From contig CATNEN010000033.1 of the NCBI GenBank assembly GCA_950097015.1, positions 434,001 to 498,000 on the forward strand: DNA of 64,000 nt, read 5' to 3'. Below, in pieces: positions 17,637 through 64,000 of the stretch; positions within the stretch are counted from its first letter, which is position 1; each line of letters begins with the position of its first letter. The translations under genes and the position numbers were made by a program. The DNA is from Macrostomum hystrix. Lineage: Eukaryota > Animalia > Platyhelminthes. The notes under the pieces were generated by a model. It searched no databases. It was not told the DNA's origin and worked only from the letters and a program-made list of their open reading frames with translations.

Positions 17637-18738
17637 CGTCAGTGGCGGGCGGTGACGCGCTGCGGCCGATGACTGGAAAAAAATCAAATCGCATTAAAAA
17701 AAATAACCAAATTTGCCTTCAAATTCACGTACGGTGACTTAAAAGAGCGTATAATATATAACATATAATGAGTGCACATTTATTATGTACACAGTCTGTA
17801 AATCGAATGTACACTGTATGTAAATCGAATGTGCACTGTATGTACATCGAATGTACACTGTATGTACGAATGTACACTGTATGTACATCGAATGTACACT
17901 GATTGCACATCGAGTGAACCCTGTATGCATATCGAATATGTGCGCCACATACAAGCTAAAATACTAGAAAATAATTTCCTCGGTAATTTTGGTCCTTACC
18001 GAAATCGATCAAGTCCCTAAATTATATTCCGATTTGGAATCTGGCTCAACCAAATGTTCCCTTCCTTCAATAAGACAAATGTTTAAAAGGTCCAAGAGAG
18101 ATAATTATAAAAATACAAAGCGAAAGAATTTCTGAAGGCACCTCCCCGAATATTAATGAAACCTGCCGAAATGCAAAAAAATTGCACAACCATCCAGCCA
18201 GTCCCTAAAAGCAATGGACTCAAGTTGCTGATATAAGTAAAATCATACTCTGCAATCTAGTTATTTAACCAACTAAAAAGCCTAACGGAATGCAATTAGT
18301 GGCGTCAAATAACAAGCCAAAAAACCGAGATTCGCCTTAATTGAACTCCAATCCATTTTTGATGGACAGGTGAAGGCTAAATAATTTTGTATAATTTCGT
18401 GTCAGCCTTTTTATGTATGACGCAGATACGCATATAACAAAGTACGGAATGTGTATTGCCCTAAAAGTGATGGGTATAGCTAAATCAAAGGTAGCTAAAT
18501 CAAATTTATTGCACATGACAGACCAGCTGGCCTAAAAGAATCAAGATTAAAAAATGGACGGCTAGATAGCTATTAGAATAGAATAAATCACAGAGAAAAA
18601 TCACTGCAATAAACAGCAACATACACTACTGACTCTTACACATATTTTAGTAGACAAACATGTTTATTGCTAAAGATAGTTTTCGTAAGTAAAGAAACTG
18701 GTAAAGTGTAGCAAATCGAGTGTAAAAAAGTATAATTT

Positions 18739-34489: not shown

Positions 34490-34548
34490 CTGAAATTCAA
34501 GTTGAAAACATCTTGTACATACACTAGTATATACAATTATATTTACAG

Positions 34549-34904
34549 GAGTGCTGCAGCAATGGCACATCTTTTGGTAACACTAGACCCACAGCCAGCA
34601 AGGAGGCAATTCTGCCCATTGCACTGACTCCTGAGCACACACTCACAGACTCAGGCACAGACTTCATGCAGGCACAGACTCACACAGGTGTGTACATCTG
34701 CCCTGACTTTCTCATCGTCAGGCACAGTACACTTTCACTCACTGAGCCTTGGAGGTTGGCCCTCAAGGGGCCAAATTGCATGACAAGCCTGCAAGCCTTC
34801 TCTCTGTGGCTGCTCCTCAAATGAATGTGGCCTCAATGCAGAATTGAGCTCAAGGACCTTGGTGCGAGATGCAAACATGTTATAAAGCTCTGCCACTCAC
34901 CCCC
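34549..34904 (-). mobile_element. tRNA-derived SINE copy (CpG-decayed)
   Basis: The reverse complement aligns along its length with the 51343-51680 copy. Confidence 0.8.
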
Positions 34905-43420: not shown

Positions 43421-45141
43421 GAATACTAATTCAAGGCAAAATAACTATTTTGTTTAATATAAGCCTACAATACTGCCTTTGGCTTTATCATTTGCACATT
43501 TCTATCAATCAATCGATTCGGTCAATTAAAATAGACAAATTCAGCCTGTTGGGAATATTGGGAATACTGTGAATTACAGAAATTACAGTTGGTCCAATGG
43601 CAATAGAAAAAGAAAACAACTGAACTATGTACTACTACTAGGCCCTAGCTCTTGTAGTGCCACTCAAGGATTGTTACAATGTCGATAGCTAGAATATTAT
43701 TTTGCTTCAGGTATAATCTATAGTTTTTTTATCTACTGGACAAGCATGTCTTGCAAACTAGACTAGGCCTAGCTAGTAGAGCTCTGGTCTTGCTATATAA
43801 TATTTGTACTTTTTGACTTCGACACATAGCTAGCTTCCATTTTTATAAAAGACTCGTCTCGTCTTTTTTGTTAACCTCATATTACAACCTAAGGCTAAAA
43901 GTGACAAAATGTGTAAATCTAAAAAATAAATAAACAATTCAGGTCGATAAATAGTCTTTTTTGTCTCACGAGATTGGAAACCGAAGAAATAAATTATTAT
44001 TTTGCATTTTTGCAATGTTATGGTCGTGAATTTGAAAATTTTCATATTAAAATTACTTAAAAGGGATTGAATCATACCTACTTGATCAGAATAAATCTGT
44101 GCTTAAAAAAACTTTAGATTTTCTATTTTTATATATTTCGTAGATACGTTCTAATAAATATTTTGTTTGATCGGGAAGACATTTGCGACGCATGAATGTT
44201 GTCAGAAAAAATTGAAATGTCCCCATGCAGCACATCGACAATCAACCAATTTTTATCCTCTGACTCATACCACCTTTATTCGTATATGAAATATGAATCT
44301 TATATTCCGGATGCAATCCTTAAAAGGCTTTATTGGGTAGCATTATGCATATCCTTCGAGTATGCTTTTTCCACAATGTGATTTTCTCCTTCTTCGAAAA
44401 AATCTTTCTTCTTCGAATTCAAGATCATGTTTGCTTATGGAGTTGAAAAGGATACTCTGTCTACTTTTTTGTCCGTATAGTCAGAGGAAGTTCAATTTTT
44501 TACAAAATATTACAGTCGGCACACTCAATGACAACAAAAAAGAAGCTAGTTAACTAGATATAAAGATTGGCCTCCGGTCTACAGTGATTAATTATGTACT
44601 TGTATAAAAATATTTAGACTCCAAATTGCCATTTAATAGGCTCACGTGCATTGTTCTAAAATTAGGGTTAGTTTTTGGTTTCTTACAGAACAAATAGCCT
44701 ACTAGCTGCCTCTCCAAGCTGTTTGACAGAGAACAAACTGTACTAATCGGACTTTTCAGTAAACTCATCTGAACTCGCATTTCAATTGGCTTCAATTTTT
44801 TAAAGCGGGAATATTTGTTCAGATTTCAGTTTGTGGAATTTTAGAAGACCGGCCGAACGCCGTAATGTGCTCATAGTGATGAGTATAAATTAATTTCTGA
44901 GCAGCTTTTGAAGATTCTTAAATTTATCCTCAAAAGCAAGCCAAAGCCTTGGTTGGAACTCGCAGAAGTTTTTGTTTTTGAGGAATTTCAAGACAAGTTC
45001 TAAAATCCCTATCGGCTAAACTTCCATGTTTCACATCGGTGAAATGTTTTAGCAAACTAGTCCATGGCTCCATCGATTATTTGTTGTCTTTCAGAAATTC
45101 CTTGGGTATTAATAAGCCGATCGCTCATCAAAGGGCTGGCT

Positions 45142-46033
45142 TCAGCCCGCAATCCAAACTTCCTCCGATTCGCCAGCGAAGGCGGTGGCGAAGCTGCTAA
45201 GGCTGCAGCGGTCGCGGCCGTCGAAGCGAAATGCTGAGCAGTTGGCGGCCTGGGCACAGAAGGCGGCGCACTCGAACGGAACCTGAGCTGCGCTGTTCCA
45301 GGACATTGTGCCGGCGAATCCCGAGGTGACCAGCTGTGGGGCGGCCGATGAGTCGAACTTGCGGAATCGAAGGCCCTCGGAGGCTGCAACCGGCAAATCG
45401 AGTGGATCGTGCAAAACTTGGCAGTCTTTGGTGATGGAATCAATTAGAGAGACATCTATTCGAATGTGACAATGGCTACTTGTGTAAAGACCGGAATCAT
45501 TTCGGAATATTTTATCCAGCTACTTTCGGTTCAGTAATTTTGTTGTATATGAAAACCTCAATTTGGAAAAGTATGCATTCGGGTGTGTGGATCGACGAAT
45601 GGTGTTTGAAATTTTGAATATGAAATATTCTAATAAGCAAGACATGTCTTGTCACAAGTACTCACCAGTTGGGTACACATTTTCGTAGATTGTCAGACTC
45701 CAACGCAGAGCCCAAGGAGCCGTAGGAGGAGTCGCACATGCAGAGGGCTCGAGCCTGCAGAGCAGCGAATCGAAACCCGCCATAGGCGCAGATCTCGCCG
45801 CACAGCTGCACCGTCATGTCGCTTCTGGACAGAATCCCGTCACCCGAGATCTTGACGTTAAAAGGGCCAAGTCTGGTGACGCCAACGAGTCCCAGCATGT
45901 CTCTGTGGGGTGGCGCCTTGTCCAAGAAGCAGCCCACATAGAGCGGAGTGGCCTTGCGCTGGCACAGCGACCCGGTGACCAGCAGAACAGCTAGTGAAAT
46001 CTCTTTCAGCTTGAGATGCATCTCAGTCTGCAT
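45142..46033 (-). pseudogene. WSC + PAN/Apple-like secreted protein, copy 1, frameshifted (exons 46033-45666, 45383-45142)
   Basis: Paralogous to copies 2-7, but about 61 nt encoding CSLSCGGNALQMCGGPYRNS are replaced by 2 nt. This removes 3 WSC cysteines and shifts the donor from phase 1 to phase 2 (exon sum 610, not a multiple of 3). Confidence 0.8.
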
Positions 46034-46209
46034 CAGACGTGTCTGATGTGCAAGAGTTCACGAATATATTGGCAAGTTTTTCGCGACAGGCATAAGCAAA
46101 AAATATCCTTTTTGTATTTCGTTTCTTGTCCGTTTCTTGTTTGATTCGGGTGAATAGGGAATTGCTTCTAGATGTGCCGTTGCATCGCCATGTATTGATT
46201 TTGACTAGT

Positions 46210-47650
46210 TTGCGCGGGCTGCGCTAACTGGCGTTTGTGTACGCTGCCCACCCCTGCCCCCCCCCGCGGCTTCCCCCCACCCCCGGTGTTTGGGGTGGGC
46301 TGCGTGGCGGGGGGTTTTTATGCTCCGAGGTAGGCTCTCTGGCCTCGCTGTCGCTTGGCAATTGAAAATTTTTTTGAACTGTTACAACTGATGAGTCATG
46401 TCACACCATTCTCTGACGGTGAAGGAACTGCGCACGGCCTTGAGTGCTAAAGGCTTGCAAACCGCAGGCAACAAGCACACCCTATTGGAGAGACTTCTGC
46501 GGTCTCAAGGCTCAGCGGACACGGGTCTTATCGATAATTCGGACACCAGCAATCCATCGAGAAGGCGAGGGCCTGACGACAGGACGGCGGCGGTCGGCGG
46601 CGGCGAGGCGGCAGGAGAGATCCACGGGACTGGCGACCTGGACCGGGACCTGCTGGAGGCGGAGAAGCAGCTGCGCTTGCTGACAATTCGTCGGGACCAA
46701 GCGCGCCTGGAAGCCGAGATCCGTCAGCTGGACCGCCGTGCCGATGAGCCGCAGCGGCGACCCGCAAATGCCTCAGTGCCCGGTGAGTACTCATGCCTTG
46801 AGGATTTAGTGCTGGGACCTACTGTCAAAGTGCCGGATGATGTGCAGCGGGCGGGGCAGCAGCACCCGAATGCGTACCGGGTGCCGGAGTTCATCAGTGC
46901 TCGCAAGCGGCTGGCGCTGAACAAGTCAAGTCAAGCCGGCAAGCAGGCCGCCCTGGACAGCCTCTCTGTTGGCGACTGGATCACCGGGAACGCCAACGCG
47001 TTGATGCAGATGCTGAAGGACGGCAGACTCCTCGTCCTCCGTGATGGCGCTATCGACATGTCGGAGCTGCTGGAGTACCTGAAGCACACGGCCAAGATTG
47101 GCGACCTCCTCGATCTCGGATTCGACCGCGGCCGCGTTTTGCGCTATGACGATGAGTACAGAGTGCAGCAGGCTGAGGCCGGCGCCTGGGACAGCTCGGT
47201 GACCGACCTGAGACTGGTGGCGGCACACCTGATGGCTCCGAATCTTCAACTGCAGACCGGCTCAGTGGGCAGGTAATCAGCAAAGCGACCGGTCTGCTTT
47301 GACTTCAACAAGGTGTCCGGCTGCCAGCGCGATCCGTGTACGCGCACAGTTGTAGGCGCTGCGGCCAGGCGCACTCGGAGGCCTCCTTCCACAGAGCGGA
47401 GGGCGGCCAGGCGGCAAAAAACAGATGGACGGGGTTCAGCGGCAGGGGTCTCCTAACATCGAGTCGCCCGCCCCTGCCGCTGCTTCGGTCGAACCCCAAA
47501 ATGAGGGCGACTCAAGCGGGACCCTCTCCACCGACTTGCGCCTTGAAGCCTGGCGCCTAGAGCCGGCCGACACGGAGATGCCAGGGAAGCTCGCGCAGTT
47601 CGTTTTGAGCGGTGTGAAGGACGGTTTCCGCATCAGAAACGTCAGCAGTT
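46210..47650 (+). mobile_element. Decayed tyrosine-recombinase retrotransposon (DIRS/Ngaro-like) 5' part: SAP-domain gag-like ORF1 (46398-47276), broken CCCH/CCHC finger and start of the RT ORF
   Basis: ORF1 begins with a SAP motif (LTVKELRTALSAKGLQTAGNKHTLLERL) and contains EYLKHTAKIGDLL...VLRYDDEYRVQQA, a DIRS/Ngaro gag-like motif. After an in-frame TAA comes CFDFNKVSGCQRDPC/(frameshift)YAHSCRRCGQAH. The overlapping frame LRLEAWRLE...FVLSGVKDGFRI resembles the pre-RT segment of YR elements and is truncated near 47640. Confidence 0.65.
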
Positions 47651-47744
47651 CGGTGAAGCTGGAAACATGGAAGAGCTGGAAACATTCTCATAGACACTGT
47701 CATAGTTTTGTCAGTTTTGGAGTTTTGTCATGCAATTCACGCAC

Positions 47745-47870
47745 ACGAGGCCAACCTCTAAGGCAAAGGCAGAGTTATAGTGTACACTGCCTGAACGAAC
47801 GAAGTCAGGGCATCACACAATCGTGTGAGAGGGCGCCTTCGTACAGTATCTGTGTGCGTGGGCAGAATTT
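47745..47870 (+). mobile_element. Internal fragment related to the SINE family
   Basis: GGCCAACCTCTAAGGC...GTGTACACTGCCTGA..GAAGTCAG...GTATCTGTGTGCGT aligns to the 51343 SINE. Confidence 0.55.
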
Positions 47871-48102
47871 CTTATTCCTGGCTACGGGTCGACTGTCACA
47901 GAGGACAATTATGTGCCGTGAGTGTCCACCACCTTCCAGCAAAAAATAAGCAAATCATAGAAAATCATTCAAAACATCTTTTTGCTTCAAATTAACATCG
48001 TTATTTTTTATTAGCCTTCAGCCTGTACAAACAGTACTTCATAAATATTTTTGACATGCGAGTATAGTCTTCGGAGCTGTGTCCGTCTTCAATGCTCGAG
48101 CT

Positions 48103-49029
48103 TCAGCCAGAAACCCAGAGGGCACCAGTTTCGCCAGCAAATGCGGTGGCGAAGCTGCTCAAGCGGCAGAGGCCGCTGCTGAGGTCGAAGCGATAGGCGG
48201 AGCAGATGGTGACTCGAGCACAGAGAACTGAGCACTCAGCTAGGCTCCGAGCTGGACTGTTTGAGAATAGGGTGCCTGTGAATTCTGAGGTTGTGACCAG
48301 CTGAGGCCGGACAGAGGCATCGTTCTCGCTGAAGTAAAGTCCCTCAAAATCTGAAAATAAGAAGTTCAAGAAATACTTAACCGTTTTTTAGGTACTGGAC
48401 AGCAGTGTCAATTATTCTGCGTGTCACTCAGGACTGAGCCAATTAAATTTGAAAGACCGGTTCGGTTACAAAATAAGTTTGGTATAAAGTCAGAAGTAAC
48501 CACCGAGCCAACATTAAATGCCTCACTATCAGCGCAGCGCCACCACCTGGCTCGTCGCTGCTGAACCAAACTCACCAGATCGGTACACATTCTCGTAGAC
48601 GGAGTTTCGGTAGGGGCCGCCGCACATCTGCAGCGCGTTTCCGCCACAGCTGAGGCTGCAGTCGGACTCTGTTGCAGAGCCCCAGGAGCCGTAGGAGGAG
48701 TCGCACATGCAGTAGAGTGTAGCCTGCAGAGCAGCGAATCGAAATCCGGCATAGGCGCAGATCTCGCTGCACAGCGGCACCGTCATGTCGCTTCTGCTCA
48801 TAAATCCTTCGCTCGGGTCGTCAATGCTGAATGGACCAAGTTTGGCAATGCCAACCAGGCCCAGCATGTCTCTGTGGGGTGGCACCTTGTCCAAGAAGCA
48901 GCCCACATAGAGCGGAGTGGCCTTGCGCTGGCACAGCGACCCGGTGACCAGCAGGGCAGCCACTGCGATAGCCGCCACAGCTCTGAGTCTTATGAGCATC
49001 TGTTGAAGCAGGGTGTTGAGCTCTGGCAT
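48103..49029 (-). CDS. WSC + PAN/Apple-like secreted protein, copy 2 (exons 49029-48576, 48350-48103; ~233 aa)
   Basis: Signal peptide; 8-Cys WSC domain (YVGCF..MTV..C..IC...F..AALQ...CxC..YG.......C...C......CGG..RNSVY); phase-1 GT-AG intron; exon 2 carries C-x3-C-x5-C...F.F....C.L. Exon sum 702. Confidence 0.85.
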
Positions 49030-49932
49030 CCGTCGGATAAGCTTCGTTAATTTATGAGCTAGTCTCAAAACTTAATAGAGGTTGAAAATGGCGTCCCAAG
49101 AGAATCGAAATTTGCAGAATAGTCTATCTTTCGGACAGGATATTGCGCGTGTCATTATCATTGCCTTCGTTTTTTCTGAGTCTTGAAGCAAACCAACAGC
49201 AAATAAAGCAAGCCAATTATAACGAGACAGGTGCTCATTATCTGCATTTTCTCAACGGTTGCTCACACAATTTCGGCAATTCAGCTGAAAATTTACCACC
49301 CTCTAGCTTTGAAATTTTGGGAGTGATTGACGTCGAAAGCTTTCCAAATTCTAACGAATTATAAAAAATGAAAACAATGTAAAGCGATTTTATTCCTACT
49401 CGTACAATGAAATCAAGGCACTTCGGCACCCGTTATGCGTTGATGGCAGGACTAGTAAATGCCCATCTGGTAGTGAAATCTTCCTGCATTTGTAATCCGT
49501 GCGCCGATTTAATCTTTAGTAATGGTTTAGTTACAATGCACCACTCAATAATAATATCCATCAGGACAGACGGGACCCTGCACCGCGTCTACCGATCCAT
49601 ATTATATGTTTTTGTGTAAAACGACAGTCTGCACATCGTTTGTCCTTAGCGTAAGCATTCTTAACCAAATATATATTTACTAATTTTGAGGCGGTCGTAG
49701 TCCGTTATGGCATGGTTAGAGATCCAGACTCACGAACAGTTCGGGGTTCGATTTTTTACTCCACTGTAAAATTTTTTAACTCTGCATTGCTTTAATTCAA
49801 CCAACTTTTAAATGGGTACCAGCATTGTCTGGCGTAATTCGGAGTGGTGAGTATCCCCCAGTCCATGGACTGAACAGTCGTACGCATTTACAGTACAGGC
49901 TTGCTCTCAGCTTGACGAACGGGGGGGGCCAA

Positions 49933-50799
49933 TCACCAGCCGATAATCCAAATTTCGCCAGATTCGCTCACAAAAGCGGTGGCGAAGCTGCTGAGGCGGC
50001 AGAGGCCGCTGCTGTGAAAGCGAACGGAAGAGCAGTTGGTGGTCTGGGCGCAGGAGGCGGCGCACTCAAATAGACTCCTAGCTGGGCTGTTCCAGAACAG
50101 GGTGCCGGTGTATCCCGCATTGGTGATCAGCTGAGGGGCAGCAGAGGCCATGAACTTGTGGAAGCGGAGGCCCCCGGTGGCTAAAAATTGAAGATGTTTG
50201 CGAATGAACAGGATATTGAGCAAGGTCAGTGGAATGTAAATTTGGCAGAATCACTAAGTACACAAGTTTGACACCCTTGAGTACGCGAAATAAATGAATA
50301 AATAAATTTGAGCAAAGCTGAATTAGCTTCACAAAATATAGGTAGCAGTAGCAATTAGCTGCAGTACACTCGTTAACTGACGGCGCTCACCAGCAGAGTA
50401 TACGTTCTCGTAGATGGAGTTTCTGTAACCAGCGCCGCACATCTGTAGGGGATCGCCGTTGCAATTTTGGTTGCACTCAGATTCCGCCGCACTGCCCCAG
50501 GAGCCGTAAGTTGAGTCGCAAGAGCATTGGCCAATATTTTGTAGCGCAAAAAATTGAAAACCGCCGTAGGCGCAAATGTTGCTACAGAGCTGTATCGTCA
50601 TGTAGCTTCTGCTCACCATTCCCTGGCTCGAGTAGTTCACTTCGATAGGACCTAACTTGGAGACATGAACGAGGCCAACCATGTCTCTGTTGGGCGGTCC
50701 CTGGTCAACGAAGCAACCTACATAGCGCGGAGTGGCTTTGCGCTGGCACAGCGACCCGACGACCAGCACGGCACCCACTGCGACGGTCAACAATCGCAT
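49933..50799 (-). CDS. WSC + PAN/Apple-like secreted protein, copy 3 (exons 50799-50391, 50180-49933; 218 aa)
   Basis: Same architecture; exon sum 657. Confidence 0.85.
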
Positions 50800-51342
50800 T
50801 CGACTGTTAGCTGGCTGCGGTTGAGGAGTACAGTGTTCTTGGTTTTAAGCAGTTGTCGCTTGCAAAGTGACGCGTAATGTAGTGCTTCACTTTTATGTAT
50901 TTCAATCTTCCATCTGTCATGCTTTGTTTTGCTCTGGACAATAGGGAGGCATTTTAAAAGGCCTTCTTTAACAAGCCATCAAACAGGAGCCGATTGACAG
51001 CAGGCTATTTACCTCGCACCCCTGTACCCGTACTCTGGCTATCCCAACAACTTCATTCTGGTGTGAAATTTCTTTCGCATCAAGTTTTCAGTGGTAATTT
51101 TTACCATTTTACATGCACAAGAGGGGACTATTGTCTGCGTTGCCAATCACTTAGTCCTCAAATAAATGAGATAGCCACTTCGCAGTTTTCATTGGCTTTT
51201 CCTGGAGCTGCTGAGGGAGCCTCGTTGCGCCGATTGTACCAAAGTATTCTCATTGCTCGCTAAAGTTTTAGGCTGGTTAAATCTCTTGATTTTGTAAAGT
51301 GGCACTTGCAAACAAAGAGCGTGTTGACTAGGCCGACTGTCA

Positions 51343-51680
51343 GGGGGTCGGTGGCAGAGCGGTTAACGCGTTTGCCTCTCGCACCACGGTCCCTAAGTTC
51401 GATTCCACGGCGAGGCTACATTTATTTGGGGCGCAGCCGCGGAGAGAAGGCTTGGGGGCTTGTCGTGCAATTTACGCCCTTGAGGGCCAACCTCCAAGGC
51501 ACAGTGAAGTGTACACTGCCTGACGATGAGAAAGTCAGTGCAGATGTACACACCTGTGTGAGCGTTTGCCTGCGTAAAGTATCTGTGTGCGTCTGTGCTC
51601 AAGAGTCAGCGAAATGGTCAGAATAGCCTCCTCGCTGGCTGCGGGTCTAGTGTCACTAAATGATGTGCCATTGCCCGCAT
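51343..51680 (+). mobile_element. tRNA-derived SINE, best-preserved copy
   Basis: The 5' head has an A-box (TGGCAGAGCGG) and B-box (GTTCGATTCC) at tRNA-like spacing. The body is shared with copies at 34.5, 35.7 and 47.7 kb. Confidence 0.85.
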
Positions 51681-52345
51681 ATGGTTGGCAGTGACAGAAA
51701 TCTGTTCTAAAAAGCTTTTAACAAACCCTGTTGTTGATAGGAGCACGAGAAGCTGTTCAAGGAAACACTTTCACCAGACTTTTGACCACCATGCATGAAA
51801 CATGTTGGCTATCGGACAGTGTTTTTTAAACACAAAATTATGTCTTGACACTTTAATAAAAAATTTTTTTCTTCCGTGACCATTTTAGCCACAAGCCATC
51901 TGCACACCTGTGTTGTCGTTCCTCGTGCCGCCGCAGCCGCACCCGAGGTGCGCAAGACAGCGAAGTTACGCAGACCTCAGCGACCGCCAGGACTTCCCCT
52001 CCCCCGCGCACGCTCGATCTGACCGCCTAAATGTTCTACACTCCATATTGCTCTAAATTGAGCACTGCTCGTAGAATATTATTTTCTTTAGCTCCTTTTA
52101 TTATGGTTGTCCTAGAAAAGCAAGCTATCTTTTTAGAATAGCAGATCGACAATACGTCGATTACTAGCCCTGCAGCACTGAGTCCTGCAGATGAAGCCGC
52201 AGCATTAAGTCACTGAGGCCACCTTAAGACTTCCAACTTCAGAATGATCAAAATGAAAATTGTTTATTGAACTGAGGCTCGATTGAGGCTCAGAGGGAAA
52301 ATTTGGTTTTCTTATTCTTAATCAGCGCAGAAGTTAACTCCACAA

Positions 52346-53482
52346 TCAGCCGACAATCCAAACGTTCCCAGATTCGTTGCTGAATGCGGTGGCGAAGCTG
52401 CTGAGGCGACAGAGGCTGCTGCTATCGTTGAAGTGATAGGCGGAGCAGCTGGCGGTCAGAGAGCAAGTTAGTGAGCACACGACCAGGCTTTGAGCTGGGC
52501 TGTTCCAGAACAGGGTGCCAGAGAACTCAGCAGCTGTGAGCAGCTGGTTTTGGGCAGACGCATCGTACTTGCGGAAGTAAAGTCCATCAGCGACTGCAAC
52601 ACAAATTCAATGAGAAATGTGACCAACGAAAACCCCGAAGTAAGCTCGAACTGTAGGAGTTGGATTGATTTTTCAGCAATCTTATAACAAGAGTCCCTTC
52701 TTTTTTCTTATTGCAGTGTTCGCATTGTGGCTTTTAACGCGATCTGAATTATTATTGACTGTAGAAATTTGCACTGCTTCTTGAGCTTGAATCGAATTGT
52801 GAAAATTTATTAGCAAAATAAACTTGGATAGATAAACCAAGAACCACTAGGAGTAGTAGGATGGGAAACTAAGTTTCTTAGAAAAAAATTGAAGGCTGGT
52901 TTTTTTGCGCGAAAATATAATACAGAGATAAGAAATTATCTTATTGTTTAGATTGAAATGGTGAAAGCTTTTGATTGGAGGCAGATACAAAGCTTTTCTT
53001 TTGATATAACTTGCCTAACGAATTTATTCTCCTAGTGGTCCTTGCAATAAACATCTACTGCACTCACCTGATGAGTACAAATTCTCATAGACAGAGTTTC
53101 GGTAGTGGCCCCCGCACTTCTGCTTTGCATTCCCGCCACAGTTTAGGCTACAATTCGACTCTGGCACAGAGCCCCAGGAGCCGTAGGTGGAGTCGCAGGC
53201 GCAGCTGGTTGAGTGTTGCAGGGCAAAGTAGCGAAACCCTCCGTAGGCGCAGACTGCGCTGCAAAGCTCCACAGTCATATCGTTTCTGGTCACAATTCCC
53301 TGATCTGGTAGGTTGACGCTGACTGGGCCAAGCCAAGCAATGCCAACCAGGCCCAGCATGTCTCTGTGGGGTGGCGCGTTGTCCAGGAAGCAGCCCACAT
53401 AGAGCGGAATGGCTTTGCGCTGGCACAGCGACCCGGTGACGAGCAGAGCAGCCACCACAATGGCCGCCAGTCTTGGGCACAT
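52346..53482 (-). CDS. WSC + PAN/Apple-like secreted protein, copy 4 (exons 53482-53068, 52593-52346; 220 aa)
   Basis: Exon 2 is absent from the ORF track and was translated by hand (VADGLYFRKYDASAQNQLLTAAEFSGTLFWNSPAQSLVVCSLTCSLTASCSAYHFNDSSSLCRLSSFATAFSNESGNVWIVG*); exon sum 663. Confidence 0.85.
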
Positions 53483-54754
53483 CACTCGCAAGTCGACTTT
53501 GACAAATCTTAAATCACGAACAAGCATAAAAGCTGACTGAGCCAGCAGGAGGCTCTACTTACGATGAAGATCCGAAGTACCCGCCCTTGTTACACACTTT
53601 CTTGTTCTTCGGCAAAGACTGGCAGCCACGCCAGTGAGAAAGTCCCGCATTGCTCTTCGCAGTGGCAAACGAGAGTAGAAAACTGTCTTTTTAAAATTGA
53701 CTGTTAGCGATGCCGATGCAATTAGTCGACTAAAAGCTACTCAGAGCTACTATAGAGCTCTTTAGAAGAAAAGCTCACATTGTAAATGGATTGAGTGTAA
53801 TTTTGACTGGTGCGAAAGCGGTACTATCTTAATTGCATTGTTTCTTTCAGAGCAAATTTTGAGAGACAGTAGGCCTGCTTGCGCCTCATTTAAAGATAAA
53901 AAAATCGCGATAATGCTTTTGTTAGAACGGAACAAATGAGACATTATGCGGGTTTTATCACGATTCGCATTTTAAACATTCGATTCTGCAAATTGACAAT
54001 ATCAGTTACTAGATTGGTCTGAATGACTACAATCATACTGTAATTGCATTGTAACCGTACTGTAATTGACTGCAGTGAGCTGCAATTCAACTGTAAATGA
54101 CTGCAGTGAGCCGCAATGCAACTGTAATTGACTGCAATTGTCCCCCGTCAGTACTGCTTTCTCGGAGGCTTGAATAGTTTTAAAACATATGAAAAACAGT
54201 AAATTTTTCAGATCTGAAATTCTGACGGCTTTTTTTCTCAAAGCATAGATATTGCTTGCTTGGTTAGATGGCAAATTGATTTGCATCTGGATCCATAAAT
54301 CTAGATAATGTTTTTTTAGCATAATCTAAAACATTGGGAAAGTAGCAGAGACGGAATGCTGTTAAAAAGGCAGCGGAGTGCTGTAAAGAGCCTAGAAAAG
54401 TACGTCATGGTGGCAGAGATTCACAGAGTCTTTACAGAGATGGCAAAGCCCTGCTCAAAGGGATGCCAAAGCCATGGACTGGGATAATGGGGGACAGAGA
54501 GGGGCGAAGGAAGAGGCGACAGGTTCGGAGGAGGAAAGCCTAGGGTTGCAAACTGACCAGGCCTGTCTTGCAATCTAATCCGTACATTCGTGATTGAAAA
54601 GGTCGGGTTCCATTTTAAAGTCCCATGAGGCTTTTTTGCCTCTTATTTTTTAGGTTGCTCTCTCTGGTTCAAAAGATCCAAGAATGCACGATCATTGTCC
54701 CATTGTTCATCTGTGCCCAGTGTTCCAGTCTCCAGTCCAACTCCGATCCAAGAG

Positions 54755-55574
54755 TCACTTGACAAGCCAAACGTCGCTGTTGTCTTGGTTGTCAATGACG
54801 GCAGCGAACTGGCTGAGACGGCAGAGTCTGTTTGTCTCGTCGAACCGAAAGGCGGAGCAGTACACAGTCCTGATGACGCACAGATCGGCGCACTGCAATA
54901 CACTTTCTGCCGCGACGTTCCAGTCGAGGATGCCAGCGAAGTAGGAGGTAAAAACGATGCGCGGAGCGTTCTCGAATTTCAGCTTGGACAGTTGAAACCC
55001 ACTGTGGTCGGACTTTGAGGCTGCAGGGTGAGTCAAGATTTTTAGGGCTTCAGTGCAGGCTTCACTTCAGTGCTTCTGATTTTCTATCGAGTCCTTTAAC
55101 AGAAAGTTAAAGCTGTCTGTCTGATCTAGGAGCTGTCTAAATGAACTCACTAAAGTAAACAATTTCGTAGATGGAGTTTCGGTAGTCGCCTCCACAGATT
55201 TGCATGTCATTTCCCGAGCACGTCAGCTTGCAGTCAGTCTCATCAGCAATGCCCAGTGAGCCGTAACTTGAGTCGCAGGCACATTCTCTCTGAGCCTGTA
55301 CACCAAAGTAGCGAAAACTGCCCATGGCACAGACTTGACTGCACAGCTCCACATTCATGTTGGTTGCGCTGGAGTAGATGCCCTGGCTGACGTAGCTGAT
55401 ATTGTACGGCCCAAGACAGATGACTCCAACCAGGCCCGGCAAGTCCCGATTGGGCATGGCGGAATCCTTGAAGCAGCCGATGTAGTTGAGTGTTACAGTT
55501 CTCAAAGCCAAAGTTGGCGTAGTCAGGGCGGCAACCACTGACACCGCCGTCCACACAGTCAGCTTAGAAGACAT
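54755..55574 (-). CDS. WSC + PAN/Apple-like secreted protein, copy 5, divergent (exons 55574-55151, 55020-54755; 229 aa)
   Basis: Same cysteine skeleton and intron position; different signal peptide; exon sum 690. Confidence 0.85.
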
Positions 55575-56499
55575 GGTTGTCCAGGTGAATCGGACTGGGC
55601 TCACCTCTTGCTCTTTTGTAGCAGATTTTTTAATTCCATTAAGCAGAATTTGATTGGCTCCCCTTTTTACAAAAATTCAAGCAGCGGCTTCGTGGGTCTG
55701 CATGTCAGCCTCGGCTTGATCGCTTGCGAATTTCGAAATTCCATTAACGAATGCGCTGCCGGGTACCCTTTCAGAGTCTTGCGCTGTATGTGTCTACGCA
55801 GGTATTTATTTCGTTCCTTCAGTAAAGATCAGATGATAAACGATATTTAATCTCACGAAAGAGCAATGAAGGAACGACACTCCGAAAAGATCTGCACTTT
55901 AGGAATAAAACAAGCGAATGTACGAGATGTGAGTATGGCGGGAAGCGTTGAGAAACGATTATGAAAGTCGCTAGAAACTGCGAGACCAACAAAGACATTT
56001 AAGATGGAGATAGCCTACGACTGCAAAGCCATTTAAGACTTCCATTATTCAAAACCATAGACTATCATAGTTTTTTACCAGTTTTTCTTGCGAAATCGAC
56101 TCGAATTATGGAGTCTCCTGTTTCCATGGTAGCAAACCGGCAGAGAACGCTGTTAACATGGAACTAATCGAACTAATCGTTGTTTAGTAGTCCTTGAGTC
56201 AAACCAACAGCTCGCAGGGAGGGGTTGGGTTGTACGCGCTGGCAGGGTGGATGGGCAAATGTACGCAGAGCTGATTGGCGGGAGGTGCAAAGCCACGCAG
56301 GTCTGGGTAAGGGTTAACAGATAACGCCCGCGCCCAGCCAATAAGATGGCACAGAGCAGGGACGGGGGCGGAGGGTGAGAGAGAGCGAGGCGAGGGCCGG
56401 GCCGCCAACAAAACCGGCCTTAAACAACGGCCTTGGCGGGCAGTCGACAATGCCTAACCGCCTCAGGAACACAGGCACTACACAATCATTTTTGGGGTC

Positions 56500-56900
56500 A
56501 CAATGGGATCTCTTTTTATAGATTGCTTTCCCGAATGCTTGCCCGAGTCTTACTATTGCATTAAACAGCTTTAGCAATATGGATTTTAGCACCCTCTGCT
56601 TATTAATTATGTGCTCATTTGTTATACCATCCATTCCTGCAACATTTATTCTCTTCAGCTGTTTGACAGCTCTGTCGAGATCTTCAGTGCTAATTGGATC
56701 GCACATTGGCATGATGATTTATTGCCTTGCATATTTATAACCTTTATTAATGGACTCCCCTTGAAGGATTTTGCCTAATATGTATTTTTCAACAGTTTTT
56801 TTTCGAAATGTTCATATATCATCAAGCTTTTTCAATTGGACCTACCAAAGCAAGCTGCCTCGCTTGGCTCTTTTGATTGAGCATGGTTGCTTCGCCACTC
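56500..56900 (-). mobile_element. Decayed non-LTR retrotransposon (LINE) ORF2 fragment at the RT N-terminal region
   Basis: PISTEDLDRAVKQLKRINVAGMDGITNEHI...LLKLFNAIVRLG matches the pre-RT motif (I..E.V..A...LK...A.G.DGI..E....L..LFN). Confidence 0.7.
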
Positions 56901-57556
56901 TTTGATTTTTATCATGCCAGCGTATGCTTGCCATAATCGTCAACTATACAGAGGGAACTGGGTCCATTCCCGCCTTGTCTCATTCGATCACTCCTACAGA
57001 TTTCATTGCACAATGAGCTTGCCACTGAGGCGGAGAGAAACTGAACTCCGACAGCGAGCGATCACATACATCGGTGACAAAAATAGATCACAAAAGCCTT
57101 TTGACAGAGTCAGTAACCTTGCATATGTTCCAAGCAAAGAGGCTAGTTCCAAAATCATCGACAAGAGAAGGATGTTCATTGGTTTGAGAAGATTGAAGCC
57201 AAAAATGTTAACGATGTGTCAATAGAACAGTCCACTGCTTATAGTTCATTTTTGACGCTCCTGACAGATAAATATGCGAGTACGGACTTCACGGGCATAC
57301 TTTTCGAACTATTCAGAAAATTTCGGTAGACCCTTGTGAAAGTACAATCAAGGTTTGTTGCGATAAGAATTAAAGTAAAGAAGGACAGCTAATCAATTCA
57401 TTTTGTGCTGAGAACTCGGTAGACCTCTAACATATCGACTGGGTCAATCGGATCTTTGCGCGAAATCTGATTTCAACATTTGTTCATGTTGTGCTCCAGG
57501 ATGCAATCAGTCAGCCTCAAGTGGGGCTCCATCAGGCCGGACACCCAAGGAGCCAA

Positions 57557-58338
57557 TCAAGAGGCAATCCAAAGGTCGCCAGATTCGCCAACAAGGGCGG
57601 TAGCGAAGCTGCTGAGGCGGCAGAGGCTGCTGCTCCCATTGAAGCGGTAGGCGGAGCAGTTCAGCGTCTGGGCGCACGAGACGGCGCAATCGATGAGGGT
57701 TTGAGCCGGGCTGCTCCAGAACAGGGCGCCAGCGAATCCGACTGAGGTGATCAGCTGAGGTGCGTCTTCGGCACGGAATTTGGTGAAACGCAGACCTTCA
57801 AGGGCTGAATGCATTTTCATTGCGCATTATAGAAGACAGCAAAGCATTTTATGATTCTGAAAACAGTCTGTATTGGTAGCAGAGGTGAATATCAGGACGA
57901 AGCCTACCGGCTCAACTCACCCGTTGTGTACGCATTCTCATAGATGGAATTTCGGAGCGCGCCGCCGCACATCTGCAGCGCATTTCCAAGGCAGTATTGG
58001 TTGCACTCAGAATCGGGCACAGAGCCCCAGGAGCCATACGTGGAGTCGCATGAGCATTGGGCAAAGTTTTGCACGGCAGCGAATCGAAATCCGGCATAGG
58101 CGCAGATCTCGCTGCACAGCTGTACCGTCATGGCTTTTCGTGACACAAGTCCCTGGCTTGTGTAGTTGATGCCGAATGGGCCTAACCAAGAGATGCCAAC
58201 GAGGCCCTGCATGTCTCTGTTGGGTGGGACTTGGTCTACGAAGCAGCCCACATAGAGCGGAGTGGCCTTTCGTTGACACAGCGACCCAGTGACCAGCAGG
58301 GCAGCCACCGAGATGACAAATGGAAGTTGACGACGCAT
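57557..58338 (-). CDS. WSC + PAN/Apple-like secreted protein, copy 6 (exons 58338-57921, 57804-57557; 221 aa)
   Basis: Same architecture; exon sum 666. Confidence 0.85.
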
Positions 58339-58899
58339 GAGGAGCTTGAGAACTTGAGAGCTTGAGTTTCTGCTGGTCGCGATGAGCTTGGTTGTAATCT
58401 GAAACTGTTCCTGGTTAGCGATGCAGCCTAGCAGACAAGGTCCGAAATCGGATGCTGATTCGCAGCTTGAAGTCAGATCATACCAAGGCCTTTTGTTTGG
58501 GAAGGAAGGAAAGATTGGCCGATTGTTTGAAATTGCGAGAGGGTGTGACAAAGGATCCATGTTTCGCTTTTTATTTGATTTCCATGCATGCTATTGTGTA
58601 ATTTTTTACCAGCACAGCTACAAAAGACTAGATTCACCGAAGCTTTCCGGGATGTTGCAAGCTTTTTTTAGGTTGCGCAAGGTAAGCAGAAAAAAGACTA
58701 TTTCTTCACTTCCGTTCGTTCAGTGAATATCATGCTAGTCAAAGTAACGATTGAAAACCTTCGCCAAAGATAACAGTCACTAAATGTTAAATGTAAAAAA
58801 GAGATTTTAGAGCGAAAAACTAGAAAATACGATCTTGTAGAGAGTTGTAAAATGTGCTTTTGCTTAACGCGCTACTTAAAGTAATGTCACAAGGAAACC

Positions 58900-59890
58900 T
58901 TAGCTACAACGTTTAATCTATTTTTAGGAATGAGTCATGCGCTATTTTTAGAAATAAGTCATGTGACATGAAACCGGAGAACCGGTTCTTGACATCTGTA
59001 TTTGCTTGAATTCCAAATATGGTGAAACAAACAATTATGACTCATCAGTTTCTGCATCTGTATTTACAAAATATTCCAAATATGGTAATGTTCACCTGAA
59101 AAACCCCCAAAACGCATCTAATCAAACAAGTCTGACCTCACTGTGCAAACATGTATGCCCAATGTAAACACCCGGTAGTAGAACCGGTTTCCCCCCAAAA
59201 TTTTACTTTAAATACAAGCGAAAATCTGAGCTGAAAATTCAGACTCGGAGCGGTCCACCGGACTTCAAAACACCTTACGAAGAAGAGGACTCATCTCTGA
59301 GGGAAAGACAAGTGGTAAGCGCTTTACTAGACAGAGTAATTTATCGCTAGCGATCTTTGTTGAATCGAACTAAGTTTACGAGAGCCACATATCGTCGATA
59401 AATTTGAGAAAGGCCTCCTTGTTTCCTAGGATACATTCCTAGAGGATTATTGATTGATTTGATTTGAGTTATCCGTTATCTTTCGGAGGTAACGAAGAAG
59501 ACGCCCTTCAGGAGGACCTATTAGAGATATACAAGAGAGATCTCAATTTTCACTAGGGCGCACGTTTCTATTGTGAATTCCGAGCTCGAGGAAACCGACA
59601 AGTAATATGATTCGCTCTCGTCATTTATTGGCCAATAGACAAACTCAAGCAGCTGCCAAGAAGACAAAGAAGACAAGACAACAAAGACTCAAGAAACACA
59701 GACTCGAAACCTCACGGTCGACCAGAATAAGAAGAAGAACAAGGACTACAAGGACCCAGAAGACTACAAACTACTTAAGGAATAAGAAGCAATTGCAGTA
59801 AGTGTCACGTGACTGTTATAAATTCCTAGGCAATTGTTCCCCATTGTCTAGAAGTGGGAGTTTCGTGTGTCTGATCAACACGCAAAACTC
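58900..59890. mobile_element. Unclassified dispersed repeat, copy B (homologous to 26950-28040)
   Basis: Shares both flanking blocks with copy A. The middle is a non-repetitive A-rich AAGAAGAC-like stretch instead of the 9-bp array. Confidence 0.6.
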
Positions 59891-61369
59891 TTCAATCTTA
59901 AATATAATATTCCGTACGTTCTTTGACATAACCAACGACAAGAACACAACAAAATTAGAAAACAATTTGGTGAGAAAGTGTTATAAATATTTTTTATCAT
60001 CCACAAGAAGGCAAAGTTTGGGGGAATATTGTAATCAGTTGTGAGAGACGTGCAGTAAAATGCAGTAAAAAGTAAGATGGCAAATACCTAAAGGCGGGCT
60101 CAACCAGATGGACTCAGCTGTACTGCAGGGTCAGGCGGCTAAGTGCGAGGTCGACTGTCGTTCCTCAGGGGCGAAAGCGTGCCTAGACGGCTGGGGGGGA
60201 TGGGGAGCTAATATATATGGGGACTCGACATAAGAGGATAACTTTGGGGGAGGGGAGAAATATTTTTCATGGGGGAAAGTAGCAGGAGGACTAGTAGAGG
60301 GACAGGGGATCCAGTGTTGCTGAGCTGTGGGACGAAACAGAACAAGCACGCCCGAAGATGTCGGAACTTCTGGCTTTTTTGGGAGAAAAAACGACGAGAT
60401 TATATAGGGGAGAATTCCCGCATCAGGCGCGTGAACCGTTATGAAACGTCTCCGTTGACCCAGCCTTGATCCTGGGCAGTCTACAACCGAGCCCTGCCAC
60501 GCTCTGATTGGCCCGATGTTTTACAGTAAGCTTAGGGGGGAGGTGGGGCGGGTGATATTACATATTAGTTGCGCAACGGCTCATGAACTATGAGTTTGCT
60601 TATTAGCTCGTAATTAACGAAATTAGTAATGAAAATATTTGCTTTAAATACTACATAGAGGAGATAAATAAATTTAAGTAACATATGCGAAAATTATTAG
60701 CGATTCGCATAAATGAAAAGGACATTTGAAGGTTAAGCTCCCGTCACGCTTGAGTGAACCAGAACGATGGGAAGCGGAGGTGTGGTTGGCATTTTGAGGG
60801 GTCTGAGGGATCAAGACGATGACTCATCGAGTCACCTGTTCATCGAACTTCCCAGGCTGGCCTCAAGGCTCACTAACAATACTTTGGGGAAAACTGGCAG
60901 GTGATGGGCAATTTAAAGAGTAAATTTACATTCAAGGCCCCTGGGGTCGAGTTTGGACACATCAGAATGTCTATAGTAGATTCTTTCCTTGTCTTTCAGT
61001 CATTTAACGGCTTTTAGAAATGAATTAGGCTACCTAAGTGATTAGCGAATCAGTAATATAGAAATCTACCTGAGTCCTTGACCAGTTAAGGGTGTATAAA
61101 TACGATATCCTGTGCATCTCGTGCGTTTAGAAGCGCATTTTCTGCTTAATATTTGTTCTGGCCTCAGGTTCGCTTTGTTCATAAAAACAAAAAAAAAGAA
61201 TTTAAATCGATGGGTAGAAAAACTGTTAATTTATTTTAACGATTATTCGAGAGGGGTCGACAGCAGATTATTTCGTTAAGGTTTTTGCTCGTGAAATAGT
61301 CGCTTTATTCTTCGATTTTTTAGTTTTCAACTATACGACCACAAGTTCGAGTCTAGGTTTGTTCCGTAC

Positions 61370-62150
61370 TCAGCCGACAATCCAAACGTCGCTCGATTCG
61401 TTGCTGAATGCGGCGGCGAAGCCGCTGAGGAGACAGAGGCCATTGAACCGATAGGCAGAGCAGCTGGTAGTCATGGTGCAAGCGAGTGAGCACTCAGCGG
61501 GGCTCTGAGCTGGGCTGCTCCAGAACAGGGTGCCAACAAACTCAGAGGTGGTGATGAGCCGAGGCGCTTCAAAGGCGGAAAACTTGCGGAATTGAAGGCT
61601 TTTAGATACTGCAACCGATATTGGGTAAGATTGGCTCAAGCTGTAACAACAGAGCCATGCCCGTTAGCTGCTCTCAAAAAATACTAAACCAAAATAGTAA
61701 TTCAGACAGCTATAACAAGTACTCACATCTAAGATTTGTATTTTCATATATGGAATTGCGAAAGCTCCCTCCACACACCTGTGAGGCGTTGCCGGAACAG
61801 ACGTAGCTGCACTCAGACTCCGGCACTGAGCCCCAGGAGCCGCATGTGGAGTCGCACGAGCATTCGTTGGAATTCTGCAGAGCTGCGAATCGAAAGCCTG
61901 CATAGGCGCAGATCTCGCTGCACAGCCGCACCGTCATGCCACTGCTCGAGTAGATTCCCTGGCTCGGGTAATCAACGCCGAACGGGCCAATCCTGCTGAC
62001 TCCAACGAGTCCAATCATGTCTCTGTCGGGTGGAGCCTTGTCCACGAAGCAGCCCATATAGAGAGGAGCGGCCTTGCGCTGGCTCAGCGACCCAGTGACC
62101 AGCAGAGCAGCCATTGCTATGGCAACCAGAGATTTGGATTTTAGGGGCAT
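61370..62150 (-). CDS. WSC + PAN/Apple-like secreted protein, copy 7 (exons 62150-61727, 61608-61370; 220 aa)
   Basis: Same architecture; exon sum 663; TATAAA lies about 45 nt upstream of the ATG (62197-62202). Confidence 0.85.
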
Positions 62151-63197: not shown

Positions 63198-64000
63198 TTG
63201 CAAGCTCCGTTCTGGCTAAGTCCCGAAACAAACGTTGCCTTCCATCCTCACTGGAGCTACCCAGGACTCTGATAGTCTGACTGTGCCTGGAAATCAGCAC
63301 GGTGTGCGACTCTCGAGACTTCTTGGCTTCATCCTTTCGGGCCAAGGACCCTTCACCTCACCGAAGGCCAAAGACCTGACGCCCTGGTGGCAGTACTACT
63401 ACGCAACATTTGACTTCACATTGGAGTCTACCGGATCCCGCAGTGTTCAGCAGGACAGCCGGTACAACAATATAGATTTCTGCCCAACGCTTCTTCGTCG
63501 TTGTCAATTTAGAATAACAAAAATGCAAAGCAAATCATATAAAGGGCAGAGAGAACTACAAGACGCTGATCTAAGCATGAAGCTAGAGAAAATTAATTGA
63601 GTAAGTCTCATAAAAAATCTACTGATTCATCTAGACACGGATGGAATTACGGTATTACCTTATTCTATTCATTTAGTAAGTTTTTGTCTGGTAATAAAAC
63701 AAGACGAAGACCACTAGTTAAGTAACATACTGGAGTTTTCCACTTAGTTCTTACAAAAAAAAATCGATTTGTGATATAGCTCGATCGTACGAGGCACTAC
63801 AAGAGTGTTTTAAACTAAACTATTGATCTGTACGAAATCTTATGCTATCGTCCAAATAGACTTTTCAAAGTGCATTAAAGTATTTAGCCAGCAGCAGTTT
63901 AGAAAGGTTCAACTGGTCGTTACGCACAGCAGCTCAGCTGGCAATCCATACATCGCTGGAATCGCCGCCTCTCATAGCAGCAAATCGGCTGAGCCGGCAG

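Follow-up and report, generated by a model that had tools for sequence, protein, structure and literature searches.

Tandem genes for putatively secreted WSC-PAN proteins in Macrostomum hystrix belong to a large Macrostomum multigene family

The window analysed here, 64,000 nucleotides of a contig from the flatworm Macrostomum hystrix, carries at 45142-62150 seven minus-strand two-exon genes, in which a signal-peptide-like start and a WSC exon are followed by a PAN exon. Taken as a whole, these genes are probably best explained as part of a Macrostomum multigene family of secreted WSC-PAN proteins that act as soluble extracellular binders. The small two-domain WSC-PAN form is seen so far only in Macrostomum. 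The copies in the window are the following (Pfam scores in bits).

Copy 1 (pseudogene), 45142..46021, minus strand: ATG at 46021, exon 1 45666-46021, exon 2 45142-45383; WSC 33.6 (profile positions 20-66), PAN_1 23.5.
Copy 2, 48103..48999, minus strand: exon 1 48576-48999, 225-nt phase-1 intron, exon 2 48103-48350; WSC 56.0, PAN_1 26.2; splice sites read.
Copy 3, 49933..50799, minus strand: exon 1 50391-50799, 210-nt phase-1 intron, exon 2 49933-50180; WSC 53.2, PAN_1 29.1; splice sites read.
Copy 4, 52346..53482, minus strand: exon 1 53068-53482, 474-nt phase-1 intron, exon 2 52346-52593; WSC 55.6; exon 2 139.8 against the local exon 2 model.
Copy 5 (most divergent), 54755..55574, minus strand: exon 1 55151-55574, 130-nt phase-1 intron, exon 2 54755-55020; WSC 56.9, PAN_1 25.6.
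Copy 6, 57557..58338, minus strand: exon 1 57921-58338, 116-nt phase-1 intron, exon 2 57557-57804; WSC 49.5, PAN_1 25.2; exon 2 modelled.
Copy 7, 61370..62150, minus strand: exon 1 61727-62150, 118-nt phase-1 intron, exon 2 61370-61608; WSC 54.6, PAN_1 19.7 (below cut-off), PAN_4 21.7; exon 2 130.4 against the local exon 2 model.
Copy 8, 63940..64000, minus strand: 3' end of exon 2, running past the window edge; exon 2 and exon 1 found in the adjoining contig sequence.

A preliminary description of this DNA had placed seven same-strand, two-exon paralogues here, 1.8-3.8 kb apart, and that layout holds (ATG-to-ATG spacing 1800-3812 nt). It had also given every copy an eight-cysteine WSC domain and a phase-1 intron, which is right for copies 2-7 and wrong for copy 1. 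In copies 2-7 the intron is phase 1 because exon 1 is 409-424 nt long; donors read GTGAG, acceptors are pyrimidine-rich and end in AG, and introns span 116-474 nt. Both exons remain open in all six copies, with consensus splice sites and the full set of 12 cysteines. Exon 2 of copy 4, which has no start codon and is therefore missing from the open reading frame list, was found intact by three-frame translation. The N-terminal signal peptide, judged by eye, consists of a basic start, a hydrophobic run of 10-12 residues and small residues preceding a Gln. The motif GSL[CS] followed by QRKA, described earlier for most copies, occurs in six of the seven (GSLC in copies 1, 2, 3, 4 and 6, GSLS in copy 7), the exception being copy 5, with TLA followed by LRTV, which branches outside the core clade. 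Every copy is matched by the local profile models at 128-261 bits, and at the nucleotide level the copies resemble one another in their exons alone, introns and spacers having diverged beyond detection, so the likeness within the array is not a matter of chance.

Exon 1 of copy 1 is 356 nt long; 61 nt have been replaced by 2 nt (a net loss of 59 nt), and a further 9 nt have been lost in frame. The larger deletion takes out WSC Cys6-8, leaving five cysteines, and results in a phase-2 donor, so that exon 2 is no longer read in frame; for these reasons we regard this copy as a pseudogene. Its exon 2 shares 94% identity with those of two copies in a second array on the same contig (see below).

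The WSC profile (PF01822, curated cut-off 27.8 bits) matches all seven exon 1 pieces, at 49.5-56.9 bits in copies 2-7 and 33.6 bits in copy 1. Its eight cysteines and CGG motif are present in copies 2-7 (copy 3 has CGA instead of CGG) and across the members found in Macrostomum lignano. A full-length model (pLDDT 84, pTM 0.73) contains two alpha/beta modules, with a hairpin at residues 45-53 and a disordered stretch at residues 1-18 (pLDDT <50); it is a model of the M. lignano homologue P0070, 35-45% identical, and not of a window copy. This homologue is predicted to fold as WSC domains do, with a long loop, stapled by disulfides, around a PAN-like core, and its model matches the WSC domains of Kremen1 (5FWS, E 7.7e-6) and yeast Wsc1 (7PZ2, TM 0.72 by target).

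For exon 2, the pattern C-x3-C-x5/6-C...C with the ending W[IVL]xx-stop is kept in seven of seven copies, and its four cysteines are invariant over 29 sequences. The scan with PAN_1 (PF00024, curated cut-off 21.4 bits) took in six exon 2 pieces, those other than copy 4; five exceed the cut-off (copies 1, 2, 3, 5 and 6, at 23.5-29.1 bits) and copy 7 falls just under it at 19.7. Copy 6 exon 2 was modelled at pLDDT 91.7, with plasminogen PAN and the HGF N domain as best matches (Z 7.5, 64-70 residues aligned, rmsd 2.4-2.7), and nearly all of the model's top structural matches are PAN/Apple modules. Exon 2, as modelled, is thus predicted to have the PAN fold; the earlier reading of it as a PAN module is borne out by both score and fold. 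The WSC domain itself adopts a PAN/Apple fold, with two disulfides in common (PMC9024836), which makes the protein a tandem of two related modules rather than of two unrelated ones.

Pfam, models and structural matches agree with the proposed architecture of signal peptide, one WSC and one PAN, with no anchor and no other domain. The array proteins stop directly after the last strand of the PAN module (W-x-x-x-stop), so there is no room for a membrane anchor. Each gene would encode a putatively secreted protein, about 220 residues long and shortened to about 200 by removal of the signal peptide. It would comprise an N-terminal WSC-type module with four predicted disulfides and about 20 extra residues past the RD motif (forming a beta-hairpin in the M. 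lignano homologue model), then a C-terminal minimal PAN module with two predicted disulfides, and apparently no membrane anchor, catalytic domain or other module. By analogy with known domains, the product is most likely a soluble binder built of two PAN-fold modules. With two binding surfaces it could, to judge from WSC and PAN domains elsewhere, coat or bridge glycans or glycoproteins; secretion, binding function and ligand class are what we infer for the array proteins. "Lectin" may be the wrong word, because PAN and WSC can also bind proteins (the Kremen1 WSC contacts Dkk and LRP6).

Known proteins share parts of this design. By structure, the N-terminal module comes closest to the WSC domains of human Kremen1 and yeast Wsc1 (Foldseek E 8e-6 to 1e-4), with which it has the eight cysteines and CGG in common, but the array-type WSC, unlike either, carries an extra hairpin after its first strand. 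The array proteins lack the other parts of both: Kremen, a membrane receptor, combines kringle, WSC and CUB, and Wsc1, a membrane sensor, has a Ser/Thr-rich stalk. Membership of the Kremen family was rejected on finding WSC and PAN only, in a protein that ends after PAN with no kringle, CUB or transmembrane segment. A fungal Wsc-type cell-wall sensor was rejected likewise, as W-x-x-x-stop follows PAN and there is no Ser/Thr stalk, transmembrane helix or cytoplasmic tail. WSCD1 and WSCD2 also have two PAN-fold modules in tandem and give an ESM Atlas structural match (TM 0.49-0.51 over 126-133 residues), but they consist of two WSC domains plus a sulfotransferase, whereas the second module of the array proteins is PAN_1; this family too was rejected, no member having a sulfotransferase match. 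In the Macrostomum literature WSCD2 is the human protein that WSC-type seminal-fluid candidates are said to resemble (PMC6953679). WSC-type best matches are common among M. lignano seminal-fluid candidates (in the parts of PMC5977470 Table S1 consulted; PMC6953679), and a seminal-fluid role was not among the options of the preliminary description, which did name gamete recognition. Among multi-WSC proteins of fungi and protists (copper radical oxidases; WSC lectins, e.g. SiWSC3), some also combine WSC with PAN, as do the metagenomic proteins P0149 (two WSC and PAN_4), P0081 (three WSC and PAN_4) and P0005 (PAN_1 and two WSC). Multi-WSC proteins, however, are larger, have several WSC repeats in a different order, often with a catalytic domain, and are not a one-plus-one secreted unit. 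For exon 2, the best Foldseek matches include the apple domains of SML-2 (the tandem apple lectin of Sarcocystis muris) and TgMIC4 (probability 1.00, TM 0.54). Like the array proteins, both are small, soluble, secreted tandems of PAN-fold modules only; these apicomplexan microneme proteins nevertheless have no detectable sequence homology to the array, and both of their modules are of apple type, neither being WSC.

No named or described family with the WSC-PAN design was found, in keeping with the earlier remark that the architecture was not recognised as a named family. A search of 1.84 billion proteins returned small proteins spanning both domains from M. lignano alone, all of them unreviewed "WSC domain-containing protein" entries; the literature searched holds no description of them. 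A0A1I8JKN1, A0A1I8IAD4 and PAA52995.1 / BOX15_Mlig005479g1 (205-224 residues) are of the same family and architecture, and lie in an orthologous tandem array; the first two match copy 2 in exon 1 at 60-64% identity. Such entries are automatic, with no described function, and the two closest models each contain a local frame error. WSC-PAN members found in M. lignano are Mlig005479, 006881, 015848, 021789, 023418, 025784 and 003588, and protein models of 205-219 residues are colinear across the exon junction. The orthologous M. lignano locus has at least seven copies in tandem, with only one partial gene annotated. That most copies there are unannotated could reflect low or restricted expression.

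In M. hystrix, the array runs on beyond the window with two more copies, nine in all. Within contig piece 497501-503500, copy 8 lies on the minus strand (exon 2 at 440-676 and exon 1 at 890-1312 of the piece), and exon 1 of a ninth copy is at 3236-3625. About 74 kb away is a second array of five copies in opposite orientation, three of them truncated or frameshifted, so that convergent arrays of nine and five copies share the contig. Genome-wide, at least 150 WSC exons of the array type were scored, with 409 candidates; a PAN exon lies downstream of the WSC exon in 12 of 14 sampled loci, and distant members keep the identical intron position and phase. In M. hystrix the family counts no fewer than 150 members and perhaps several hundred. 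The local amplification proposed earlier is supported, but what had been described as an array of seven is not self-contained: it forms a single branch, numbering 9 + 5 copies on the contig, within a family of hundreds, and copy 1 is a pseudogene.

Divergence among the paralogues is old (dS 0.5-2.7), with reading frames retained and all cysteines conserved. dN/dS is 0.16-0.39 for exon 1 and 0.28-0.70 for exon 2, values that point to moderate purifying selection on the array paralogues. No 9-codon window with pN/pS >1 and no hypervariable loop was found in the array subfamily. The phrase "amplified and diversified" in the preliminary description is therefore sound in its first half, while diversification is weaker than it implied (dN/dS 0.16-0.70, no window with pN/pS >1). 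Array copies form species-specific clades. The family probably evolves through tandem duplications and losses and through turnover particular to each species, with moderate purifying selection acting on it.

What such proteins do may be read in several ways. That the array is mostly dead DNA, a set of decaying, unexpressed duplicates, is very improbable. Copy 1 is broken, three of five copies in the mirror array are damaged, and the M. lignano locus shows its single partial annotation among at least seven copies; yet six window copies keep exons, 12 cysteines and splice sites at dS 0.5-2.7, amid diverged introns and spacers, and dN/dS is well under 1. A structural or adhesive secretion, with small cross-linkers in mucus, rhabdites, eggshell, cement-gland material or temporary adhesive bridging glycosylated matrix proteins, would suit two binding modules with no other part, but structural components seldom occur as hundreds of divergent paralogues, and we consider this reading unlikely. 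A tentative possibility, along the lines of the preliminary description, is that the family is a diversified set of lectins, secreted by epidermis, gut or gland cells for pattern recognition or as part of mucus, whose ligands would be glycans of microbes or fungi (beta-glucan or chitin, for example). The family has hundreds of members, and invertebrate immune repertoires typically show large lineage-specific expansions of secreted binding modules, which counts for this reading, although cysteine-rich secreted families expand for many non-immune reasons too. The nearest small soluble analogue by fold, SML-2, binds galactose, and the WSC of fungal lectins and enzymes binds beta-1,3-glucan, chitin or xylan (cited in PMC9024836). 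Neither a hypervariable loop nor positive selection was detected in the array subfamily, which speaks against such a role.

A reproductive secretion is an equally tentative possibility: seminal-fluid proteins of the prostate or genital glands would bind glycans of sperm or partner tissue, and array turnover would come from sexual selection. In two of the three parts of Table S1 (PMC5977470), about 26 prostate-limited M. lignano seminal-fluid candidates have a WSC-type best match (annotations counted there are "WSC-domain-containing", "fungistatic metabolite", "transmembrane receptor" and "copper radical oxidase (WSC...)"). A likeness to WSCD2 is described for Mlig-pro46 and "several other" seminal-fluid candidates (PMC6953679), and the prostate-linked RNA815_80.4 has two WSC domains (PMC4490696). 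Several WSC-type prostate transcripts map to multi-copy gene groups (e.g. Mlig021499.g3/g4/g8/g10), and the species-specific clades and pseudogenes are consistent with turnover of this kind. Against this reading, the Mlig gene identifiers listed for 18 of the 76 seminal-fluid candidates do not overlap with the WSC-PAN members found, and the orthologous M. lignano locus contains none of the 18 primers scanned (nine pairs, one for each of nine candidates annotated as WSC-type). Several of the prostate transcripts show alignments of 210-290 residues with multi-WSC proteins and so look like proteins of two or more WSC domains rather than WSC-PAN. Moreover, a family of hundreds far exceeds the known seminal-fluid candidate set, and no window has pN/pS >1. 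The stronger proposal, that the WSC-PAN family is a Macrostomum-specific recognition repertoire including major seminal-fluid or genital-gland proteins, its turnover tracking sexual conflict and the shift between reciprocal and hypodermic mating, is speculative and rather doubtful.

Work on regeneration, adhesion and hermaphrodite sexual selection uses Macrostomum as a model, and WSC domains sit in a large share of its unexplained secreted proteins. Recognised here is a specific two-exon unit of one WSC and one PAN, present in hundreds of copies; conserved as tandem arrays between species yet nearly unannotated in M. lignano, it offers a concrete family to test. A WSC with an apple-like hairpin insert beside a minimal PAN also bears on the relation of two branches of the PAN superfamily. 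Should this be only a generic expanded lectin family, the interest would be local. If instead it is a seminal-fluid repertoire, hundreds of genes in a 220-Mb genome would make post-mating sexual selection in hermaphrodites accessible to direct molecular tests.

Seven minus-strand genes, each with a single intron, lie between positions 45142 and 62150 of the window, as established from six-frame ORFs, junction sequences and a coordinate script. In copies 2-7, exon 1 (409-424 nt) runs from the ATG through a hydrophobic leader and a WSC region to a GTGAG donor, where one base of the next codon is left, giving a phase 1 intron. Exon 2 (239-266 nt) is preceded by a pyrimidine-rich tract and AG, and neighbouring copies are spaced 1.8-3.8 kb apart, ATG to ATG. 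Pfam recognizes WSC in every exon 1 piece (49.5-56.9 bits for copies 2-7, 33.6 bits for copy 1), with an alignment that begins at profile position 17-22 for most copies, and PAN_1 scores above cut-off in five of the six exon 2 pieces scanned, copy 7 reaching 19.7 against a cut-off of 21.4. (Exon 2 of copy 4 is missing from the ORF list because it has no start codon; it is intact.) An insert after the RD motif, described earlier from the sequence, is confirmed: between the first strand (Y-x-G-C-F-x-D...RD) and the M-T-x-x-L-C helix lie some 20 additional residues.

The extent of the local cluster was determined with profile models made from the window exons and run on flanking DNA. Two extra minus-strand copies (copies 8 and 9) lie just past the window end, one having an exon 2 that begins at window 63940. 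A mirror array of five plus-strand copies, three of them truncated or frameshifted, occupies 397.9-405.4 kb of the same contig (C33). The two arrays are convergent, with about 74 kb between them. The window holds these further features:

9840-17700, minus strand: ankyrin-repeat gene (Ank_2, 231.7 bits), between the arrays
19600-34600, minus strand: CC2D2A-like gene with CC2D2AN-C2 and CEP76 peptidase-like domains, between the arrays
1778-4040, 15.2-16.9 kb, 27.1-27.9 kb, 28.7-29.5 kb, 31.0-32.2 kb and 38.0-42.8 kb: long minisatellites that look coding
46398-47276, plus strand, between copies 1 and 2: ORF of 292 residues, SAP domain at the N-terminus (34.2 bits)
56314-56712, minus strand, between copies 5 and 6: ORF of 132 residues, judged by eye to resemble a reverse-transcriptase fragment

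The SAP-domain ORF sits in GC-rich DNA (57%), on the strand opposite to the array, and could be a gene or a mobile-element remnant. The 132-residue ORF has zero Pfam matches at E<=0.01. A 21-bp minisatellite at the stop codon was looked for behind the WSC-PAN copies and is absent there.

Copy 1 is a pseudogene. Alignment with copy 2 and one mirror-array copy shows 2 nt in place of 61 nt in its exon 1, a change by which the last three WSC cysteines are lost and the donor becomes phase 2, putting exon 2 out of frame. The seven-gene array of the preliminary description is real, and accurately described for copies 2-7, but includes one broken member. Exon 2 of copy 1 (window 45108-45418) is 94% identical over 308 nt to L001:4808-5115 and L001:8632-8939, which are exon 2 of two copies of the mirror array (contained in stretch L001), some 75 kb distant. 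Every other match between copies in the nucleotide comparison is only 67-85% identical and confined to exons; the contrast suggests recent local gene conversion or duplication involving this exon alone.

The proposed reading of the two exons as WSC followed by a PAN/Apple-like module is upheld by the Pfam matches, the exon 2 model and the invariant cysteines. Modelled alone, exon 2 of copy 6 gives a pLDDT of 91.7, and nearly all of its top structural matches are PAN/Apple modules (plasminogen, the HGF N domain, SML-2 lectin, TgMIC4, the PAN of plant S-locus receptor kinases, factor XI), with Z up to 7.5 across 64-74 of 81 residues. That Z value is middling in itself; it is the uniform match list, taken with the Pfam matches and the four invariant cysteines of exon 2, that makes the assignment of exon 2 as a PAN module firm. 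Inter-domain geometry was taken from a natural M. lignano homologue, P0070 (208 residues), the window genes being modelled by exon. The full-length P0070 model (27-row alignment; pLDDT 84.1, pTM 0.73) has residues 1-18 disordered, then two alpha/beta modules, the N-terminal one resembling Kremen1 and yeast Wsc1 by Foldseek, and it forms the insert into a hairpin (strands 45-48 and 51-53). WSC itself has the PAN/Apple fold, with two disulfides in common (PMC9024836), so the WSC-PAN protein is a tandem of two PAN-superfamily modules. Canonical apple domains have hairpin insertions and WSC is without them (PMC9024836); judging from the P0070 model, the WSC module of the WSC-PAN proteins would bear an apple-like hairpin. 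One alignment (MAFFT, A2) placed the C-terminal half of the WSC exon (W-G-S...C-x3-C...C-G-G) on the PAN exon (W-x-S...C-x3-C-x5-C), because the C-x3-C...C pattern is common to both exons, and this misplacement may reflect, at the level of sequence, the common PAN fold.

The nearest database proteins, at 60-64% identity, are from M. lignano. Word-index protein searches gave 2, 6 and 2 matches and were too insensitive for taxonomic range, so that an exhaustive search was needed. Run against 1.84 billion representative proteins, a profile from an alignment (A1) whose misplacement is limited to the first six residues of each exon 2 piece yielded 5152 matches at E<=1e-3. Among the best 150 of these 5152, the majority match over several stretches, resembling multi-WSC proteins, and the ones whose source was looked up belong to fungi, a diplonemid, M. 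lignano and metagenomes. Within the same best 150, single-stretch matches spanning both domains comprise eight proteins of 176-219 residues, all eight from M. lignano; six have PAN_1 at E<=0.003, four above cut-off. Some metagenomic proteins combine WSC and PAN in other arrangements, and a shape search of the ESM Atlas found no small two-domain cluster. The same atlas does contain a cluster of rotifer WSC proteins, each 209 residues long; were their C-terminal half to prove a cryptic PAN module, the architecture would predate Macrostomum. The small form is seen only in Macrostomum among the best 150 of the 5152 matches, in databases with few flatworm proteomes, and should be called not seen elsewhere rather than absent elsewhere. 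In WSC-PAN, known domains are arranged in a new way. The family is very large, has so far been seen in one genus only, and has database entries that are unnamed and automatic.

In M. lignano the locus NIVC01002389.1:56285-76752 (L017), which encodes a close relative, carries at least seven two-exon WSC-PAN copies in 20 kb. Of these copies one alone is annotated, as the partial gene BOX15_Mlig006881g1, and the family is strongly under-annotated in that species. In a separate tree for each exon, the M. lignano copies form a clade of their own, as do the core M. hystrix copies, and earlier branches lead to copy 5 and to the lineage of copies 8 and 9, a pattern that fits birth-and-death turnover or concerted evolution inside arrays. 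Pairwise dS is 0.5-2.7, and dN/dS is 0.16-0.39 for exon 1 and 0.28-0.70 for exon 2 (Nei-Gojobori); by these estimates the window copies are old, constrained and moderately fast-evolving. A scan of the nine local copies, crude in that it uses pairwise counts with synonymous sites close to saturation, found 0 windows of 9 codons with pN/pS above 1, and so offers no indication of hypervariable loops or of positive selection in the window subfamily. The predicted mature N-terminus Q-R-K-A-T/A-P is common to window copies 1-4, 6 and 7 and to the M. lignano protein P0002; it is kept across both species despite near-saturated synonymous sites among paralogues, and could bear a pyroglutamate or be a motif for processing or recognition.

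The architecture argues for a predicted soluble extracellular binder with two surfaces. The immune or mucus recognition originally suggested for it is plausible; a serious rival is a reproductive role, in which WSC-PAN proteins would serve as seminal-fluid proteins. PMC5977470 gives 76 prostate-limited seminal-fluid candidates in M. lignano, 45 with any BLAST match, and by our own count from part of its Table S1 the best match is WSC-type in about 26 of those 45; WSCD2 similarity of Mlig-pro46 and others has also been noted (PMC6953679). However, the gene ids in the PMC6953679 supplement do not overlap the WSC-PAN members found, the orthologous M. lignano locus contains none of the 18 candidate primers scanned, and several candidates resemble proteins with at least two WSC domains. 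Looking for the gene ids of WSC-PAN members in the literature found none.

The M. hystrix genome was searched over 220,453,370 nt in 42 contigs. The WSC exon of copy 2 gives 150 scored matches among 409 first-look candidates, on many contigs and mainly clustered. The PAN exon of the window subtype has 11 genomic matches only, all on C33; with a broader PAN model, 12 of 14 sampled distant loci show a PAN exon downstream of their WSC exon, and intron position and phase are identical in two distant members. Two distant genes on contig C1 (L018:250-1023 and L019:301-999, near 25.95 and 26.04 Mb) read as single open frames of 232-257 residues. An identity as intronless retrogenes was rejected, the ORFs being read-through of 69-nt phase-1 introns that have no in-frame stop; these frames are no independent proof of a joined protein. 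Such open introns in distant members are a trap for ORF-based annotation. The genome-wide WSC matches, the downstream PAN exons and the common intron together indicate that the window array is one branch of a larger family, which by these matches numbers at least 150 genes and possibly several hundred.
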